Source: Macrostomum hystrix (lineage: Eukaryota > Animalia > Platyhelminthes). From it: a stretch of DNA of 64,000 nt. The notes under the pieces were generated by a model. It had not been told where the DNA came from. It did no database searches and saw only the letters and a list, made by a program, of their open reading frames with translations. Positions within the stretch are counted from its first letter, which is position 1. Each line of letters opens with the position of its first letter. Shown piece by piece: positions 9,472-60,600 of this stretch. Both the position numbers and the translations under genes were made by a program. The DNA lies in assembly GCA_950097015.1 (NCBI GenBank), contig CATNEN010000025.1, positions 7,564,001 to 7,628,000 of the forward strand, in the 5' to 3' direction.

Positions 9472-26322
<16,851 letters not shown>

Positions 26323-41167: not shown

Positions 41168-42053
41168 ATGAATTCGTTGGGCATCATCGCCGCCGTCTGC
41201 TCCGTGCTGGCCGTCGGCCTCCTGCTGTACAGCCGAAACCGGGGCCGCGTCTACGCCTTCCTAATGGAGCGCATCTGCCGGGCCTACAATGCCCTCTGCT
41301 GGGACCGCAAGCGGCGCCTCTTTGCCTGCCTCGGCGAGCGCTTCGCTGGTCGCCGGTTCATCCACGTCCTGGAGATCGGCGGCGGCTCCGGCGCCAATTT
41401 CGCCTTCATGCAGGCCGCTTTCAGTGGCCGAATCTTCCTGTCTGTGGTGGATCCGTGCCGCGAGGCCCGGCCCTACCTCATGTCCGAGGTCGCCCGCTGG
41501 CCAACCATTCGGCTGGAGCGCCACCTTGTCCGCTGCGCCGAGGATCTGGCCGGCGCGTTTCCTGACCAATTCTTCGACGCCGTTGTTGTGACCTTTGTGC
41601 TCTGCTCCGTGCGCGACGCGGACCGGGTTTTGGCCGAGGTTGTCCGCGTGCTGAAACCGGTGCGAACCGCTAATTTCTAATTGGCTGCTTTTTTGCTATG
41701 CTGTTGCTATGGCTAGCTTCGTTGCTATGTTGTTGCTAATGCTGCTACTCAATGCTGATTAGCATATTATTCGTAGTAGTATTAGTTGTCTAAATTTAAG
41801 CCGTCTCCATGGTCAGAACGGCGTCTTCATCTTCCTGGAGCACGTGGCCTCAAGCCGGCCCTGGGTTCGCTACGTGCAGCGCCTCTGCCAGCCGATTTGG
41901 TCCGTGATCTTCTGCGACTGCCGCCTGTTGAATGACCCGGAGGCCAGCCTGACTGGCGCTGGATTTCGTCAGCTGAACTATCGGCGAAACTGCGACCTGC
42001 CCGCGCACGCCCTGCTGGTCCAGGAGCAACTAGAGGGACACGCCGTCAAGTAG
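41168..42053 (+). CDS. METTL7: METTL7/TMT1-like SAM-dependent (thiol) methyltransferase, 2 exons, ~242 aa
   Basis: Exons 41168-41659 and 41817-42053 (729 nt). Hydrophobic N-terminal anchor; motif I VLEIGGGSGANF; VVDP; FDAVVVTFVLCSV; EVVRVLKP|NGVFIFLEHV; QRLCQPIWSVIFCDCRL. Confidence 0.9.
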
Positions 42054-44407: not shown

Positions 44408-44530
44408 GACGCGCGTCGCCCTGCTGCCCTTCTGCGAAGATAAAAAGCAAACGCGAGACGGCTTCACAACGTCGATCATCTGTCAAACGGAACTCTGATT
44501 CAGAACAGAAAACATTCAGAAAGACTAAAT

Positions 44531-47500
44531 ATGACACTTTATCTGCTTCTATTGCTGATTCTGCTGCTGCCCACACCTCCCTCTAGCGCCAAGTCGACGA
44601 TGCTGGCGCTGGACTTGACGCCGAGCTTAGGCGCCAAACTCATGCGGCGAAGCGCCGGGCCGTATCGAGTCGGCATCGACACCAAGCGGGCGGCCAAGGA
44701 GATCATCTGGCTGGGCAGTCGCGAGTCGCAGAAACCGCTGATTGTGGATTCTGAAGGCAACATCCGCGTGACGAAGCAGGACCGGCTCACTTCAGACGCC
44801 TGTGAGTGGCCAATTTTCCTTTGAAAGCAAGTCACCTGTTCGATAGTTTACCAACTTGTTAGGCAGTTTACCAACCTGCTAGGCAATATAGAAACCTGTT
44901 AGACAGCCTACAAACCTGTTAGACAGGATCTAACCTGTTAAATAGGATCTAACCTGTTAGACAGGATCTAACCTGTTAGACAGGATCTAACTCCTGTTAG
45001 ACAGTATCTAACCTGTTAAATAGGATCTAACCTGTTAGACAGTATTAAACATGTTAGACAGGATCTAACCTGTTAGACAGTATTAAACCTGTTAGACAGG
45101 ATCTAACCTGTTAGACAGTATCTAACCTGTTAGACAGGATCTAACCTGTTAGACAGTATCTAACCTGTTAAATAGGATCTAACCTGTTAGACAGGATCTA
45201 ACCTGTTAGACAGTATCTAACCTGTTAAATAGGATCTAACCTGTTAGACAGTATCTAACCTGTTAAATAGGATCTAACCTGTTAGACAGGATCTAACCTG
45301 TTAAATAGGATCTAACCTGTTAGACAGGATCTAACCTGTTAGACAGGATCTAACCTGTTAGACAGTATCTAACCTGTTAAATAGGATCTAATCTGTTAGA
45401 CAGTATCTAACCTGTTAAATAGGATCTAACCTGTTAGACAGGATCTAACCTGTTAGACAGGATCCATACTGTTAGACAGGATCTAACCTGTTAGACAGGA
45501 TCTAACCTGTTAGACAGGATCCATACTGTTAGACAGTATTAAACCTGTTAGACAGTATCTAACCTGTTAGACAGGATCTAACCTGTTAGACAGGATCCAT
45601 ACTGTTAGACAGTATTAAACCTGTTAGACAGGATCTAACCTGTTAGACAGTATTAAAACTGTTAGACAGGATCTAACTCCTGTTACACAGTATCTAGCCT
45701 GTTAAATAGGATCTAACCTGTTAGTCAGTATTTAACCTGTTAGACAGTATCTAACCTGATAGACAGGAGTAAAAGTGCTAGACATAACACCAACCAATGT
45801 GTTGGACTTTTACCATTGAAAAAAATGGAAGCTCTAGTTTTAGAATAAAGCTTTGATTTGAATTAACCAATTCACTTTAAAGTATTTTCTGCAAGTCTAA
45901 AGACAGAGCAGAAATGGGGCTGCACAGTGTGAAAGTCTTTAATTGACTATTACTTATTAAAAATTCAAAGTCCAATTAACTGTCTGGTTTTATTCTGAAT
46001 TTGTGTAAACGAAGCAGACAGTGACGCTTTTGCATTTCTGCTTTCGCTGCAATTCTGTCGCTTTTGTGTTACTTCGTGAACCTTTTTTTACTGCCTTCTA
46101 TGTTGATTTCTTTAATAGTAGTTCTGCTTTCAATCATTTGTTTGTTTATTAACGCCTAGTTAAATTTGAAAGAACAAATACTTTTCTAGTGCAAACAACT
46201 TAATATTTTGCGTATTAACAGTAGATAGACCACGCTATTTTTCCCTGGGGAAAGACGGTAATAATAATAATAATAATAATAATAATTGCAGGAGGGCTGC
46301 GGGCAGTGGCACATCATTTGGTGACACTAGACCCGCAGCCAGCGAGGAGGCAATTCTGCCCATTTCGCTGACTCCTGAGCACACACGCACACAGATACTG
46401 TACGCAGGCATACGCTCACACAGGTGTGTACATCTGCCCTGACTTTCTCATCGTCAGACAGTGTACACCTTCACTGTGCCTTGGAGGTTGGCCCTCAAAG
46501 GCGTAAATTGCACGACAAGCCCCCAAGCCTTCACTCCGCGGCTGCGCCCCAAATGAATGCGGCCTCGCCGTGGAATCGAACTTAGGGACCTTGGTGCGAG
46601 AGGCAAAAGCGTTAACCGTTCTGCCACCGACACCCTAAGGGAGAAAGACAATGGGGATATTTCAAATACTTCCTACTGCCTACTTAACGATAGCGATTTT
46701 CGTGAGAGTCCACCATATGGAGTTTTTCCGCCATTTACGATGAACTAAAACTTTCAAAACTAACTTTCAGCAAATATTGTCGTAGACCCTGTTTTCAAGG
46801 ACGAATCCGAATTAGTTTAAAAAATATAATAATTATCAAAACAATATGAACAAAAGCTGTAGCCGACATGTTTACATGCAGATAAAATTTTGTAAGCAGA
46901 AAAACTATGCCTGTTTGCTGATTTTTTGCCACCAGACCCCCGACGTTGAATATCTCGTCAATGCCGATGTTTTGTGATCTGGAAATTGTTTCGTTGGATA
47001 AAGCGGAAAATTTCGCACCTCTCGCACCAAGGTCCCTGAGCTCGATTCCGCGCGGCGAGGCCACATTCATTTGGGGCGCAGCCGCTAAGAGAAGGCTTGG
47101 GGGCTTGTCGTGCAATTTACGCCCATGAGGGCCAACCTCCAAGGCACAGTGAAAGTGTACACTGGCTGACGATGAGAAAGTCAGGGCAGATGTACACACC
47201 TGTGTGCGTGTGTGCTCAGAAGTCAGCGGAATGGGCAGAACTGCCTCCTCGAGTTCACCGAACAGTCAGCGCATGGTTTTCTGGCAGACTGCCAAGTTCC
47301 AAGTATTTTAAAAGACATTCACCGTTTAGGGAATAGATCCGCTTTCTATTGGATGAATTCACATGTGGAAATTTCACGGAAAAAAAGCTTGTCTGATTCA
47401 AGTTACCTAAGTGTGAGCACTCGTTTAGTGTGCTCAATGTGAATTTAGCCAAACAGTGCCTCCCTCCTCACCTACTACGCCCACGCATTCTTCCCCTAAT

Positions 47501-50500
47501 CCTCTTGCGTCTCCACCCAATGCGTACCTGGCCAATAAAGTCAGGTAGCGCAATTTCCCGCCTACGCATATTCCGTGGGTTTGGCCAAGTGCCAACCTTG
47601 GTGTAACAGAAAAATATGATTCATAGGTGATTTTTTTGTTTGAATTGCTTTCAGCCATTGATTTAGAAATAATTTACCTGTTCTGTAAACCAATTTATTA
47701 AAAATATTTTCAGTTTTTAACATTCAGATGGTGCTAAACTTCAGTACGGGACAGCCGCTGGTCCTTCCGGGTGAAAACTTGACAGAAACTGGCGAATTCA
47801 AATTTCTGATTCGAAGTCAAGTGGCTCACTTCTACATCTGCATGAGCGGTGATGGAAAAGTCTATACAATGGTAATAAAGATGGCTCATTATCCATGGAC
47901 CAGATTTAACTAAACTGCTATTTATCTGCCACTTCCATTAGCCTCAGATGATTTCCACTGATAGCAATCTGCCACTTCCATTAACCTCAGATGATTTCCA
48001 CTGATAGCAATCTGCCACTTCCATTAGCCTCAGATGATTTCCACTGCTATCAATCTGCCGCTTCCATTAGCCTCACATGATTTCCACTGCTATCAATCTG
48101 CCGCTTCCATTAGCCTCAGATGATTTCCACTGATAGCAATCTGCCACTTCCATTAACCTCAGATGATTTCCACTGATAGCAATCTGCCGCTTCCATTAGC
48201 CTCAGATGATTTCCACTGCTATCAATCTGCCGCTTCCATTAGCCTCAGATGATTTCCACTGCTACCAATCTGCCGCTTCCATTAGCCTCAGATGATTTCC
48301 ACTGCTACCACTGCCTCTTCCATTGATCATATTGATTAATAAAAAATGGAGAATTTAGACAATAATACTCTATAGAAAGTTTTGTTCTACACCTATAAGT
48401 GTTTAACAGAACTTTATTGCTGTTCACCAATAGAGTGAGGGGGAGAGGGGCCAGTGGGATGTGATGATGACATTGGCACATTGCCAAGAAAATTTAGTGC
48501 AGCAAATTGTAAAAATATTTCCTAAATTTTGGATTGGGATAAGACTTGAACGAAACACAGATTATTAAAAATGCTTAGCAGTTTGGAATCATAGTTAATT
48601 TTCTGAAGGATTATTTGGATAAAAAACTTATTTCTGTCGAGAAATTTGTGTTGACATTACACATTAAAATTAACTAAAAATTCTGTTTGCTAAAACGAAC
48701 AGGTAAATCCGGGAGAGGGATATCCTCGAAATAGGGAATCCTTGGAAGAGGGAAATCCCATGAAATAGGTGAACCCTGGAAATAGGGGGATTCCATGAAG
48801 AGGGGAATTCTGGCAGAGGGAAATCCCGGAATAGGGGAACTCCAGAAAACGGTAACATACCAGAAAGAGAGAAATCCCAGTTAAAGGGAATCTTGGAAAG
48901 AGGGAATCCCAGAAAGAGGGGAATCCCAGAAAGAGGGGAATCCCAGAAAGAGGGGAATCCCAGAAAGAGGGGAATCCCAGAAAGAGGGAAATCCCAGAAA
49001 GAGGGGAATCCCAGAAAGAGGGGAATCCCAGAAAGAGGGGAATCCCAGAAAGAGGGGAATCCCAGAAAGAGGAGAATCCCAGAAATAGGGGAATCCCAGA
49101 AAGAGGGGAATCCCAGAAAGAGGGGAATCCCAGAAAGAGGGGAATCCCAGAAAGAGGAGAATCCGAGAAAGAGGGGAATACCAGAAAGAGGGGAGTTCCA
49201 GAAAGAGGGGAATCCCAGATAGAGGAGAAGCTGCCGACAGAGAGAGATAGTTCAGAAGGACAAAAGTGAAATTGAGTTTGCTTGATTTTGGCAGACTTTG
49301 CAGAGAACTAGAACCTTCAACTCCGCAGAAAGTGCAAGCCAATCAACTGTCGGACGATTGTCTGTGGCGCGGCCGACTCCAATTCGATCCACTTGGCAGC
49401 GCTGGCAAGCAGCGCATGACCTCTCGGGTCACAATGGTGACCTTCAATAGCGCGTTGAATCCGTCCTCGACAGCGGCAGAAGAGGAGCTGGAAGGCGGGA
49501 ACAACGGAACGCAACGCAATCAGGCCAATATTCGCTGGTACCTATCCTTCGCGACGGACGGCGGAGCTCCGATAAACGCTCGCCATTCTCACCTGGGCGG
49601 CCAGATCAGAGTCATGGCCATTGAAGAGTTTGACACGAAGCCCCTAGCCGTGAATGCCAACCTGGATTTGGACAGCGTTGAAGTTGGCCAAGCAGGGGTG
49701 GTCCGGGTGGAAGCCCAGTCGTTGAATGCTGCCACCAGGCAGCGTCTGATTGAAAGCGAGGTCGGCGGCCGGAGCCGAGTTACTTACGTTTGTTCGGCCG
49801 CGGCGCAGGCCGCAGCTGAGCACTCGGAGTTGCGTTGGAATCAGAGTAGGCAGGTACTGTTCCAGCTGCAGCTGATGCGAAATCGCCTGAGACCTCTGGT
49901 TGGTCCGGCCGGGATTCGGCTAGTCAATCGCTTTTTGCTCAGGGACCTGGCGCTTGGCTTCCTTGACGACGAATCTGCCGGAGTTGTAAGGGCCGTCAGG
50001 CGTCAGGTAGTTCAACGGGGTAAGCGTCGACGTCGGAGTTTCAGACGACGTTTCCTGTGCAGGCGCGACCTGCTGACGCTGGCGTTTCAATCTTTCAGCG
50101 TGGCTCGGTGGCTGATTGAGCGCGACTGTCCGAGTATGGCTGCCGGCGGCGCCAAAGCTCGTCGCCAGCGCCAACGCCGGCGTGATCGGGTTCGACGCTC
50201 GTTGCTGCGACTTCTCCGACGGGCCGGAGGTGGCGGCGCCACCCGTGGAGGCAGTGTGTTGGCCGCTCTGCGAAATGCCTTGAACATGTCGCTGCCGTCG
50301 AAAGCTGAAATTCGCGAAGCTCTGCTCCGTCGCCGAGCTGAACGGAAGGAACGACTGCGGATCATGGCCGTCCGGCCCAAAGCTGGCGACCTGACTAAGC
50401 GGCTTCAACTACTGCGCTTGGAGGACTCCGTGATGTTCGCTCAGACTGTGCGACATTCGCAGCTAGACTTGCTACTGGACCGCCAGGCCGGTGCAAGCCG

Positions 50501-50678
50501 GAAACAGCGCACAAAGAGTGAGGCCGGGCAACGGAAGCAGCAGCAGCAGCTGAAGAAGAAGAAAAAAAAGAAAACGCGACTTCTGACAATGAAGCAGCTT
50601 GCCAAATTGCGTGAAAAGTGGCAAACCTTTCCAAAGTTCTATCAGAATATTTGTTCCGACTTTTATCCGAGCCATTAA
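44531..50678 (+). CDS. FGF: Secreted fibroblast growth factor ligand (FGF8/17/18-like core) with a long basic C-terminal extension, 3 exons, ~592 aa
   Basis: Exons 44531-44801 (T|gtgagt, phase 1), 47714-47871 (ATG|gtaata, phase 0), 49329-50678; total 1779 nt. Signal peptide MTLYLLLLLILLLPTPPSSA. Core motifs WLGSRESQKPLIV, FLIRSQVAHFYICMSGDGKVY, DDCLW, VTFNSA, WYLSFATDG..P align by eye with FGF8 [55 protein letters not shown]. The intron positions and phases match canonical FGF genes. Confidence 0.78.
44850..45770. repeat. 19-bp minisatellite (AACCTGTTAGACAGGATCT), FGF intron 1
   Basis: Tandem copies. Confidence 0.93.
46259..46630 (-). mobile_element. tRNA-derived SINE, apparently full-length copy
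   Basis: On the minus strand: A-box TGGCAGAACGG (46616-46626), B-box-like GTTCGATTCC (46572-46581), body, 3' stem-loop (GGCTGCGGG 46295-46303 / CCCGCAGCC 46332-46340) and an (ATT)9 tail (46259-46285). Confidence 0.82.
47018..47251 (+). mobile_element. Second copy of the same SINE, truncated at both ends
   Basis: Reverse-complement match to ~46345-46605 (cctctcgcaccaaggtccct..., ggcttgtcgtgcaatttacgcc, gagaaagtcagggcagatgtacacacctgtgtg). Confidence 0.85.
47925..48322. repeat. 43-bp minisatellite (CCTCAGATGATTTCCACTGATAGCAATCTGCCACTTCCATTAG), FGF intron 2
   Basis: Tandem copies. Confidence 0.93.
48710..49222. repeat. 17-bp minisatellite (GAATCCCAGAAAGAGGG), FGF intron 2
   Basis: Tandem copies, degenerate at the left edge. 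Confidence 0.92.
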
Positions 50679-54698: not shown

Positions 54699-57600
54699 GC
54701 AGCAGCAGCGGCAGCAGCTAGAGGAAGCACTGGAACGATTGAAACGCGAAAATCAACAGCTTGTAAGCAGCAGTAATAATATCGGTTCATTGGTACCCAA
54801 TTAGGCTAACAGGCAACTTCCAGTTGGCAAATTGACAACCCGACATTTTGCAAGCAACCTACCATTTGTACAGGCACAACCATCAGCTCACAGGCAACCT
54901 ACCAGCTGACAGGCAATCCAACCAGCTCACTGACAACACCACCAGCTCACTGACAACACCACCAGCTCACTGACAACACCACCAGCTCACTGACAACACC
55001 ACCAGTTCACTGACAACACCACCAGCTCACTGACAACACCAACAGCTCACTGACAACACCACCAGCTCACACGCAACCCACCAGCTCACAGGCAACCCAC
55101 CAGCTCACACGCAACCCACCAGCTCACACGCAACCCACCAGCTCACACGCAACCAGTCAAGCTGATCGCTTTTGTATTTATTTCAGTCCGAGCGCTGTCA
55201 GCAGGCGGCTGAAAATGACGAACGCGTGCGCGGCCTGAAGAAGCGAAACGCCGAATTGGCGGCGATAGCCCGCCGACTGGAGGAGAAAACCAAAGTGCAG
55301 CAGGAGAAAAGCGCCTACGAACTGGAGGCGGTGAGCCGAAATGTTTTATAATTCTACTGTCAGTAGCTAGCAAAGGAAATTCAATTCTAATTTTCGACAG
55401 AGCCAAGTCGCCATAGCCGATCTGCGGCGTCAGCTGGCGGATCGCGATCGCGAGCTGGAATCGTTGAGACTGCTCAACAGCGCCAGGGAAGCCCAGCTGC
55501 GGGTGAGTCGGGATAATTCAGACCAAGGGAAACGATCGCTTGTTTGCAGAGCACTCGCCTGACTCAAGTAGAAAGTATTCTTAAGTCGATTCGCATTGTT
55601 TATTTAGTCAACAGCCAATCTGGACTCCGAGACGCTTGAGAGCATGCTCAGAACTGCCGAACGAGACCGACTCGTTCTGGAGAGACAGCTGGCCTGGAGC
55701 CGGGTGAGGCGAATAAGGATTGGGACTGGGATTCAGACTGGGATCGGGATCGGGATCGGGATCGGGATTGGGATTGGGATTGTGATCGGATTGGGATTGA
55801 GATCGGGATTGGGATCGGGACTTGGACTGGGATTGGAATCGGGACTTGGAATGGGATCGGACTGGAATTCGGACTGGGATCGGGATCGGGATCGGGATTG
55901 GGATTGTGATCGGAATCGGGATCGGGATTGAGATCGGGATTGGGATTGAGATTGGGATGGGGTCCGGGATTGGGATCGGGACTTGGGCTGGGATCGGGAC
56001 TGGGATCAGGATTGAGATCGGGATTGGGATTAAGATTGGGATTGGGACTGGGATTGGCTGCGGGATTGGGATCGGGACTTGGACTGGGATCGGGATTGGG
56101 ATTGGGGCTGGGATTCGGACTGGGATCGGGATTAGGATTGTGATCGGGATCGGGATCGGGATTGAGATCGGGATTGGTATTGAGATTAGGATTGGGATTG
56201 GGTCTGGGATTAAGTCCGGGATTGGGATCGGGATTGGGATCGGGACTTGGACTGGGATCGGGACTTGGACTGGGATCGGGACTTGGACTGGGATCGGGAC
56301 TTGGACTGGGATCGGGACTTGGACTGGGATCGGGACTTGGACTGGGATCGTGACTGGGATCGGGACTGGGATCAGGATTGAGATCGGGATTGGGATTAAG
56401 ATTGGGATTGGGACTGGGATTGGCTGCGGGATTGGGATCGGGACTTGGACTGGGATCGGGATTGGGATTGGGGCTGGGATTCGGACTGGGATCGGGATTG
56501 GGATTGTGATCGGGATCGGGATCGGGATTGAGATCGGGATTGGTATTGAGATTAGGATTGGGATTGGGTCTGGGATTAAGTCCGGGATTGGGATCGGGAT
56601 TGGGATCGGGACTTGGACTGGGATCGGGACTTGGACTGGGATCGGGACTTGGACTGGGATCGGGACTTGGACTGGGATCGGGACTTGGACTGGGATCGTG
56701 ACTGGGATTGGGATTGGGATTTTGATTGGGACAGGGATCGGAACAGGGATTGGAATTGGGATCGGAACAGGGACTGGAATCGGGATTGGGATCGGGACTG
56801 GGATTGAGCAAAATTGGGATACAGGAACTGGTACTTACTACTGAGAGAGCAGAAACTAGGATTGTGACGCAGACAGAGCTTTGGGCACCGGACAGCAAGT
56901 TGGGCTGTCGCAGGAAGCTGCCGATGCACAAAAAGTTCCCCATTTTCAGTCCGTAGCAGTCAGTTGGATCAGACAGTTTTATCCTAAATTTTCGTTACAC
57001 TTTCTTTCCAAATCTGAAACCGAAGTTTCTGAATTCTCATTGACCAGAGCAGCTGTTTTCAACTCAGCGGCTGATAAAAAATCATCGGCGATGCAAAGCC
57101 AGCCCCTTGAGCAGAAATTTGAAACTGCCAGGGACACTGCTCGATCGAATCCCTTGAAAAGTGCACCCCGCAAAGCCGAGATGCAGGATGCAATGAGAGT
57201 ATGGGGATTCTGGTCTACAAGGGGATCAGAACAGAGCGAGTGCTCAGCGGCTCATGATTCGTTGATTTCGAGATTGGTCGGGAGAAAGAAAAGAGGCTAT
57301 TTTAGAACGCGCCTCTTGCCTGCACTGGGGTCCCCATGCAGTTCTATTTTACTTTTTCCCATTTCCACGCTCCCCTCTCCTGTCTCTCAGACTGTGGATT
57401 GTGGATTGAGATTTTGTTTAGCTGGGCCTGCTTAAGGGGAACAAGGAAATTGGCGAACAAATTGCCTGCACGAGTTGGGTTTGGAAATCTGCCAAGAGCC
57501 TGTACAAAGTCTATTTTGGTCTATCCGTTGCTTCTAGGAGCAGCAGCAGCAGCAGCAATCGGTAGTTGGCGCGACTTCAACCTGGGAGCCGGCGCAGAGG

Positions 57601-60600
57601 GAGCGACTAGCCCTGCTCACAGTCGAAGTCAGGCGGCTTGAGCAGATCCGGCGTGAGCAGGCTGCCGAGCTGGCCGCGGTGAAGCGACAGGCCGCTCGCG
57701 TGACGCAACTGGTGAGCGAAGGAAGTTTGGTAGCGGAAGAAGAAGGTAGACAAGCAGAGGAAGAAGGGTTGACAAGTAGACAGACGCAAAACTTAACGTA
57801 AAAGTTTTTTTTTAATTTGATTTATCAATTTTTCTACGATTGAAAGCCAATAAATCTTAACAAAAACGGTACAAAACACGCCAACCCCTAAACACGCCAA
57901 CCCCTAAACACGCCAACCCCTAAACACGTCTATATTTTTAGCGTCTAGCGTTTAGCTACAACCCCTACACACGCCAACCCCTAAACACACCAACCCCTAC
58001 AACCCTTACCCACGTTAACCCCTAAACACGCCAACCCCTACAACCCCTACACACGCTAACCCCTAAACACGCCAACCCCTAAACACGCCAACCCCTACAC
58101 ACACCAAACCCTAAACACGCCACCCCCTAAACACACCAACCCCTACACACGCCAACCCCCAACCCCTAAACACACCAAATCAATGACAGAATCACTCGAA
58201 AAAGCCCTAACTAGAGACAGCGAGATGCCAGCATGACAAGGTAGCAATTTTTAATCCGCAGGAAACCTCAGTGTCGGCTAAAAACAGCGAAGTTGAGCAG
58301 CTCCGTGCTCATCTTAAAGAGTACACGGCACAGAACGCTCTGCTAGTGAGTGTCTGATTGTGATTCTCTAAAACTGGATTCAACCAGGTTGCCAGAATTT
58401 TCTTGTGAGTAATCTGTCTAAAAATGATCTTTTTAACTTACTTTAACTTACAATTTTTCCAGGAGCAGCAATTGAACGGACTGCATGAGGACAACACTTC
58501 ACTGTCTATTAAGTTCTCGGATCTGCAAACCCAACTGCAACATGCTGATGAGGTTAGCTGCCATATTATCTCCCCTAACTTGGGCGTAAATTGCACGACA
58601 AGCCCCCGAGCCTTCTCTCCGTGGCGCGCCCGAAAATAAATGAGACCTCGCCGCGGAATCGAGCTCAGGGACCCTTGCAGGAGTAGCTTTGACTGCAACT
58701 CCTCGTCATGTAATTAGTGCAGCGGATTCATCACAGAAGCAGAAATAATAGAACTGTATTCGAAGTGTCGCGGCTAGATAAAAGTGCAGACTCAAGAGGC
58801 GGCAAGACCTCGCTCCAGGGCCGTGCAGCTCTGAAATGAGTCTACAACAATCCTTCTCTGCCACCCAGGTCTCAAAGAAGTCAGCGAGTATAATAGAGTT
58901 GCTTTGCCCAATGCGCACTGCGGCTCCTATTGACACAGCGAGTCAAGGCGGGAGTGATCTTGAGAGGAGTGAAAACTAAATTAGGCCTCGCTGGGGTGGG
59001 AGTAGTAACTCCGATGAAAGGCGGTGCAATCGGGTACTAGCTGAGCTCTAGCACAAAAGCTGGCGCGAAAGATTCAGTAGAATAGCGAATGCAAATAAAC
59101 ACACACTGGTATTAATAATGTAAAGCAAAGGACAAACAGAGAGACGGACTGGAGGATTAAGGCCTCCCCGCGATTTCAGTAGCCGTTGGGATATTTCGTC
59201 TCTATGGGATGTTTATGAAGTGTCGGTTTTCGGGAAATTGATTGAGCTTTCTTTTATGCTCCTTGGTTTTCTACATTTTTATTTAGGCCACATAATATCT
59301 GAACTTTTACTAAACCACTCAGGTAATGCAATCAACCAGACGATTAGAAGAGGCCTTAATTAATTCGGATCGCGACCTGCAACAGAGCCGAAGAGACATG
59401 GAACTAATGAGGTGCCAGATGGCCTCCAACGAGCTCATTATGAAGGTAATTAGGAAAAGGAACAGAATTGTGATTCTTAGACATTCGAAGGAAACCCCTT
59501 TGAGTTTAGCTTAAAGGCTATTCCTGTTCATCAAAGAAATCCCTGTTGCTCTATTTTTAGCTCATAGGCTATTCCTCTCCAGTGAGTCATTCCCATTAGA
59601 TCTATTTTTAGCAAAACGACCTTGAACCCATTTCTATTTTTAGCACATGAGGGAATCACTAGAGAAAAAGCGCGAATTGGAGACCGAACAGGCCAGGCTA
59701 AGGCGGCTTATAGAAGAAAAATCGAGCGAAAGTTCCTTTGACAAAACGGTAAGAAACAAACTTTCTGTCATCTCCCTTAAAAAATGATTTAATTCCCAGA
59801 AGGTTTCCTTCTTCGAAAAGTCCCGCGTTCAGCTAGATCTGGAGATATGCTTAGGAAAAATAGGGAGATTAGGCTGGAAAATCTAAGCAGAAGTCTGTTT
59901 CCAACACACACGCGCTGTCCTAATCCCTGTATGCACGTGCATCTTCCTTCTTTTCAAACTAATTTACTCCACTGCTCCTCTGTTCCTAATTTAAAATTCG
60001 TAACCCCTGCGTCCGGTCTCCTCTGAGACTGGCTGCTGGCCACTCGACCCTGCAGTGACTGAGCTGAGCTTCCCTGCCTGTCTGTTAGAGAATTCAATCT
60101 TTCATCTGCTCGGCTGTCCCAAACGCTGTTTGACTGTTCTAGCCTGCCTGTCTGGCCTGCTCTCAATGTCCTTGTTTTAAAAAAGTCTGCTTTTTTCTAC
60201 ACGCTCCCTCGCAAGATAGCTTCCTTTGCTAAATACGAATGGCAGACACAAAAACTTCTAGTGCTGCTGAATTATTCACTCATTATTCACTCTCTACATC
60301 TCCCCTTCCCTGACTTTCTTTCTCTCTCACTCTCTGACTCTCTCCCACTGACTCTCACTCTTTGACTCTCTCTCTCTGACTCTCTCTCCCTATCTGACTC
60401 TCTCCCTATCTGACTCTCTCCCTATCTGACTCTCTCCCTCTCTGACTCACCCTCCCTCCGTGACTCTCTCCCTCTCTGACTCCCCCTCCCTCCGTGACTC
60501 TCTCCCTCTCTGACTCTTTCCTCTCTGACTCTCTCCCTCTCTGACTCCCTCCCTCTCTGACTCCCTCCCTCTCTGACTCCCTCCCTCTCTGACTCTCTCC

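Follow-up and report, generated by a model that had tools for sequence, protein, structure and literature searches.

A candidate gene for a very divergent FGF8-type ligand with a long basic tail in the flatworm Macrostomum hystrix

The described systems that stand closest to the gene considered here are the vertebrate fibroblast growth factor (FGF) ligands FGF8, FGF17 and FGF18 (Pfam family PF00167), the FGF8-like ligands Pyramus and Thisbe and the ligand Branchless (Bnl) of Drosophila, LET-756 of Caenorhabditis elegans, and Djfgf of the planarian Dugesia japonica. The gene occupies positions 44531-50678 on the + strand of a 64,000-nucleotide (nt) stretch of the Macrostomum hystrix genome (NCBI GenBank assembly GCA_950097015.1, contig CATNEN010000025.1, positions 7,564,001 to 7,628,000), which is called the window in the following sections and to which all coordinates refer. 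Our best explanation, which we consider probable, is that it is an intact, unannotated gene for a secreted, very divergent FGF8/17/18-type ligand that carries an orphan basic tail.

LET-756, an invertebrate FGF, has a long C-terminal part, is reported to carry nuclear targeting signals and is not known to have a classical leader. In FGF18, Cys109 and Cys127 form a disulfide; the FGF8 subfamily conserves the two residues, and Cys127 is shared by all FGFs (PMC3996155), which bears out the statement in an initial annotation of this locus that FGF8-family ligands pair these two cysteines. The same annotation referred to the long cleavable C-terminal tails of Pyramus and Thisbe, and this too is confirmed: the extensions are cleaved intracellularly and are dispensable for receptor activation (PMC2923630). 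Branchless is cut by Furin1 (PMC6504889).

For flatworms, a paper of 2019 stated that the genomes of free-living species, trematodes and cestodes had yielded no canonical FGF ligand (PMC6426264), and the partners of the planarian FGF receptor (FGFR)-like patterning receptors remain unclear (bioRxiv 10.1101/2021.08.18.456902). Djfgf is the one planarian FGF gene that we found cited as described since then (Auwal et al. 2020). The initial remark on the poor characterisation of flatworm FGF ligands is fair, with the qualification that one had already been reported. The present gene would resemble Djfgf in being an FGF ligand gene of a free-living flatworm. The literature search turned up no description of an FGF ligand from Macrostomum.

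Gene model and protein layout

Three fragments on the + strand can be joined through GT-AG junctions, in phase 1 and then in phase 0, into a coding sequence of 1779 nt for a protein of 592 amino acids (aa). The places of the three pieces and both phases agree with those proposed initially. The features of the gene are as follows.

44531..44801, + strand, exon 1: start codon, leader-like stretch and beginning of the putative FGF core; donor GTGAGT, phase 1
44802..47713, + strand, intron 1, 2912 nt
47714..47871, + strand, exon 2, 158 nt: acceptor atattttcag, donor GTAATA; phase 1 in, phase 0 out
47872..49328, + strand, intron 2, 1457 nt
49329-50678, + strand, exon 3 as a whole: acceptor ctccgcag, ends at TAA
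49329..49631, + strand, core part of exon 3: Cys154 (49359-49361, in DDC), an insertion, NNGT...RWYLSFATDGG and IRVMAIE
49650..50675, + strand, tail part of exon 3, aa 251-592
50676..50678, + strand, stop codon TAA
50857..50862, + strand, candidate polyadenylation signal AATAAA, 179 nt past the stop, identified by eye only

The codon at the exon 1 donor is split, with one base in exon 1 and the other two from exon 2. Three acceptors further downstream were considered for exon 2 (47745, 47755 and 47786) and were rejected by eye, as they give the wrong phase or create a stop.

The protein begins with MTLYLLLLLILLLPTPPSSA|KS. Its first 20 residues (44531-44590), judged by eye, resemble a secretory leader with an 11-residue Leu/Ile core, LYLLLLLILLL, and cleavage is likely to occur after SSA (SSA|KS), where small residues stand at -3 and -1; a hydrophobic leader is visible in the sequence where the initial annotation placed a signal peptide. 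As a separate observation, an acceptor-like sequence, aaacattcag (window 44510-44533), stops 11 nt short of the start codon. This could be a candidate site for spliced-leader trans-splicing, which would suit a very short 5' untranslated region.

Comparison of the core with FGF8-type ligands

The strongest FGF-like stretch, FKFLIRSQVAHFYICMSGDGKV, sits in exon 2. With the Pfam FGF profile (PF00167), exon 2 obtains 13 bits (E 0.1, profile positions 45-66; cut-off 24), the search having covered the separate exon products. In addition, we used a profile of our own, built from 78 vertebrate FGF8/17 fragments, every one of which carries PF00167. The bait used to collect these fragments was a 55-residue FGF8 peptide, which proved to be 100% identical to database FGF8 fragments; some of the Logan-derived fragments are of mammalian type and could stem from human reads. 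With this hidden Markov model (HMM) the spliced core scores 10.8 bits, which is above every one of 5000 shuffles (best 7.5) and above its own sequence in reverse (-1.1). HMMER reports two colinear stretches. The first (aa 119-156) spans the junction of exons 2 and 3 and aligns both core cysteines, and the second (aa 201-228) places NNGT..RWYLSF opposite NNYT..GWYVAF. When 871 six-frame segments are ranked with the same profile, exon 2 comes first, and the core part of exon 3, which is weak alone, comes ninth.

Profile-profile and pairwise comparisons point in the same direction. The hhalign program gives a score of 30.0 (P 5e-4, probability 31%) for an alignment that extends from IIWLGSRESQK to IRVMAIE and comprises 142 colinear columns, compared with a mean of 12.4 (standard deviation 2.7, maximum 24.2) for 120 shuffled sequences; P from our own profile and hhalign ranges from about 1e-4 to 5e-4. 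In BLASTP, exon 2 matches an FGF8 exon 2 fragment with E 7e-5, and exon 3 matches a catshark fragment (P0070, labelled at its source only as 'Fibroblast growth factor') with 13/30 identities over EEELEGGNNGT..RWYLSFATDG (E 0.012). Exon 1 yields no BLASTP alignment to FGF fragments and adds nothing to the FGF score. In the language-model search of the Atlas, the cluster nearest to exon 2 carries PF00167, with a score of 0.78 that is a lead only.

The intron positions provide a line of evidence of a different kind. In a non-mammalian vertebrate FGF8 contig (L002), exon 2 reads cag|CA AAG ... TGC ATG, followed by nine more codons, the last of which is AAG|gtgagg; the exon is entered in phase 1 and left in phase 0, ten codons past the Cys codon of YICM. 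In a bird contig (L001), FGF8 exon 3 likewise begins in phase 0. In the flatworm gene, the codon of Cys133 (TGC, 47839-47841) lies 10 codons 5' of the exon 2 donor, and intron 2 accordingly matches vertebrate FGF8 exactly in both distance and phase. Intron 1 agrees with vertebrate FGF8 in being a phase-1 intron, and its match in position depends on where an insertion is placed: exon 2 is 54 nt longer than its vertebrate counterpart, owing to an in-frame insertion of 18 codons near its 5' end, within which there are two N-x-S/T sequons. The proposal that the two conserved FGF core introns are present is upheld, for intron 2 by codon distance and phase and for intron 1 by phase.

Both cysteines named initially were located, Cys133 in YICM and Cys154 in DDCLW. 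Cys133, in FYICM, aligns with FGF18 Cys109 (strand beta6, FGF8 subfamily), and in the HMMER and hhalign alignments Cys154, in DDC, aligns with the family-wide cysteine, FGF18 Cys127. The spacing of the two is 21 residues here and 18 in FGF18, and a disulfide between them would be expected from this correspondence.

The flatworm protein, which is predicted to be secreted as they are, shares with vertebrate FGF8, FGF17 and FGF18 a YICM-type cysteine plus the family-wide cysteine, a GK-x4 sequence that precedes a phase-0 intron at the same codon, a phase-1 intron before the equivalent of exon 2, and a motif NNxT...WY[LMV]xF in the last exon. Within this last exon, the core motifs align with FGF8, NNGT...RWYLSF with NNYT...GWY[MVL]xF and IRVMAIE with VHF[MI]K. 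There are also differences: identity is at best about 28% over aligned columns, roughly 36-45 aa are inserted between the second cysteine and the NNxT motif, the glycine-box or heparin-binding stretch is not recognisable, and a tail of about 340 aa stands in place of roughly 50 aa in the vertebrate proteins.

Several results weigh against an FGF8-type assignment. No score attains a curated threshold. Pfam, NCBIfam and phmmer searches of the Protein Data Bank (PDB), with the product of each exon and smaller pieces as queries, gave the exon 2 Pfam match and no other; in particular, the exon 1 and exon 3 pieces have no Pfam match, and no piece has an FGF match in the PDB. When the exon products are permuted, most of the hhalign score proves to come from exon 2 (24.6 of 30.0 by itself); exon 3 contributes a further 5.4 and exon 1 nothing. 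The profile itself covers vertebrate FGF8/17 only. The FGF alignment requires three insertions, and the placement of the second cysteine is ambiguous because BLASTP against P0070 supplies an alternative alignment. Finally, exon 3 has no homologue in a 5.8-billion-cluster collection, a library of 1.84 billion representatives or the JGI metagenomes. The single match to exon 3 that was obtained, P0001, belongs to a bacterial repeat adhesin (Calx-beta/LapA). Its eight repeats all align to one 40-aa stretch, and the match was discarded as spurious. In the Atlas, neither the core piece of exon 3 nor the tail has a usable match. AlphaFold2, run on exon 3 alone as a single sequence, places strands in the first 128 residues, with a predicted local distance difference test (pLDDT) value of 41, too low for a fold search.

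The main alternative is that the locus does encode a genuine secreted protein, one specific to its lineage and outside the FGF family, in which YICM..GK and NNxT..WYLxF are chance likenesses within some other or new beta-rich fold. It is favoured by the fact that most of the similarity rests on only about 35 residues, by the sub-threshold Pfam E value and by the silence of exons 1 and 3 when searched alone. No single score is significant genome-wide; we estimate that about 0.6 pieces in a genome would match FGF by chance as well as exon 2 does in Pfam. However, chance would have to supply jointly the motif, the FGF8-like intron distance and phase, a second colinear motif one exon further on, the cysteine pair and the leader, and far fewer pieces would satisfy these other conditions (again a rough estimate). 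With all of these required together, a chance origin is unlikely, and we regard the non-FGF explanation as unlikely on the whole.

The gene model and the FGF8-like reading proposed initially stand as the best explanation, with the reservation that the evidence is weak and comes mostly from exon 2. We consider an FGF probable but not proven, and we hold the FGF8-type assignment with reasonable confidence. Most likely, the protein is a very divergent new FGF8-type member with a long-tail architecture already known from the fly FGF8-like ligands. Its layout would then consist of the leader, a core that spans aa 45-245 (about 200 residues; net charge +3) with three lineage-specific loop insertions, and the basic tail. 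The core would fold as a beta-trefoil held by the Cys133-Cys154 disulfide and would act on the FGF receptors or FGFR-like proteins of the worm.

Coding evidence and the basic tail

Exon 3 is clearly coding. Its frame contains 1 stop in 476 codons, where the two alternative frames contain 25 and 17, and an open run of 470 codons never arose when 3 kb were simulated 3000 times with a Markov-1 model; for these reasons the frame is more than a product of chance. Most exon bins have a G+C content of 54-69%, compared with 26-47% in unique intron sequence, although this contrast is blurred by exon 2 (about 40%), by the 3' end of exon 3 and by the repeat-rich parts of intron 1. The codon-position G+C of the exon 3 core is like that of an upstream methyltransferase exon (see below), and each exon is unique within the window.

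The exon joins and the expression of the gene are predicted from genomic DNA alone, and a look-up of sequencing runs with exon 3 listed no RNA run; both points count against the proposed gene. They lead to the alternative that the gene does not work as modelled, either because the locus is silent or recently dead or because exon 3 belongs to a transcript with other upstream exons. The lack of a matching predicted protein for exon 3 in any collection searched and the shortness and only moderate G+C of exon 2 are compatible with this view. On the other side, a 470-codon open frame is far beyond chance, all four splice sites have the canonical form, their phases fit, the joined frame is free of stops, a proper leader follows the start codon, and ligand genes are often expressed weakly or at specific stages. 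We consider a defective or wrongly joined gene very unlikely; an intact, unannotated three-exon Macrostomum flatworm gene is the best explanation.

The tail (aa 251-592) adds 342 residues after the core within one uninterrupted exon. It is 17% Arg and 6% Lys, with a net charge of +51 and four Cys, and it is thus a long, open, strongly basic extension. All basic motifs listed in the initial annotation were located, and they correspond to the following clusters.

50016-50051, + strand, basic cluster, aa 373-384
50160-50198, + strand, basic cluster, aa 421-433
50328-50354, + strand, basic cluster, aa 477-485
50553-50573, + strand, basic cluster, aa 552-558

The tail has no relatives in Pfam, NCBIfam, the PDB or the Atlas, and the AlphaFold2 model mentioned above shows helices past residue 128, at a pLDDT of 41 that makes them a hint only.

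In architecture, the protein is like Pyramus and Thisbe (about 750 aa) and Branchless, in which an N-terminal FGF domain is followed by a very long C-terminal extension without a known fold. The likeness is one of architecture, and the cleavage observed in the fly ligands is for the flatworm protein only presumed. The fly FGF tails are not known to be similarly Arg-rich. By analogy with the fly ligands, the tail may be cleaved off while the protein passes through the secretory pathway; as long as it is attached, its charge might tether the protein to heparan sulfate or to the cell surface and so limit its range.

The sites that had been called furin-type were dropped as a sign of processing. 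The tail contains four R-x-[KR]-R sites, compared with 2.3 expected from composition (P 0.18), a lack of enrichment that tells against the proposed ligand, and all four, at aa 373-379 and 424-433, lie 130-190 residues beyond the core. Overlapping runs of four basic residues do exceed expectation (6 compared with 0.9, P 0.003). In view of the composition and of the non-enriched R-x-[KR]-R sites, the 'furin-type' and 'nuclear localisation signal (NLS)-like' motifs carry little weight.

A more far-reaching form of the FGF8-type reading treats the helical, +51 orphan tail as a module of its own, a range-setting anchor or a separately active fragment, in what would be the long-sought ligand of the flatworm FGFR or FGFR-like (nou-darake type) receptors; this we regard as quite doubtful. 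The initial annotation had gone in another direction and suggested a dual-fate ligand, released by cleavage or acting in the nucleus, a suggestion that finds no support here, given the number of R-x-[KR]-R sites and given that NLS-like clusters follow from 23% Arg+Lys. A nuclear role of the tail is the less likely option because the protein would enter the endoplasmic reticulum via its leader; LET-756 differs in this respect, as no classical leader is known from it. That the tail, whole or as a fragment, has a nuclear or nucleolar function, as is reported for LET-756, is the least credible of the explanations: the basic runs are indeed clustered beyond composition, but the leader would put the tail in the lumen or outside the cell and any Arg/Lys-rich stretch resembles an NLS.

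Neighbourhood and significance

The remaining features of the window are the repeats in the two introns and several open frames around the gene.

44893-45768, intron 1 minisatellite, 19 bp x 46, starting about 90 nt past the exon 1 donor
46343-46603 / 47018-47251, intron 1 inverted repeat, about 260 bp, 83% identity
47924-48324, intron 2 array, 43 bp x 9.4
48734-49229, intron 2 array, 17 bp x 29, ending 100 nt before the exon 3 acceptor
41168-41677, + strand, open piece of a class I S-adenosylmethionine (SAM) methyltransferase (Methyltransf_11, E 1e-10), 2.9 kb upstream on the same strand
25723-26319, + strand, weak match to the Major Facilitator Superfamily (E 5e-4, below cut-off), possibly a transporter exon
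13595-16399, 19610-22027 and 55648-56943, both strands, very long open frames with extreme GC skew and Pfam matches only to low-complexity families (PARP, PMG)

Private minisatellites fill much of both introns, with two arrays in intron 2. The inverted repeat of intron 1 resembles a miniature inverted-repeat transposable element (MITE) or transposon ends, and a third, partial copy of it is found at 58581-58673, about 11 kb downstream. The methyltransferase piece is probably an exon of a neighbouring gene; a look-up for public gene calls found no whole product on record for it. The very long open frames are most likely simple-repeat arrays and not genes.

If the FGF reading fails, the locus adds one more orphan secreted protein. 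If it is true, the gene is a Macrostomum ligand candidate that is absent from every protein collection searched, and it offers a concrete gene for knock-down and tagging in a species amenable to transgenesis, in which the receptor-ligand reading could be tested directly. It would also illustrate how much divergence an FGF can accumulate with its cysteine pair and intron positions intact, and these retained features suggest a route to hidden FGFs in parasitic flatworms.

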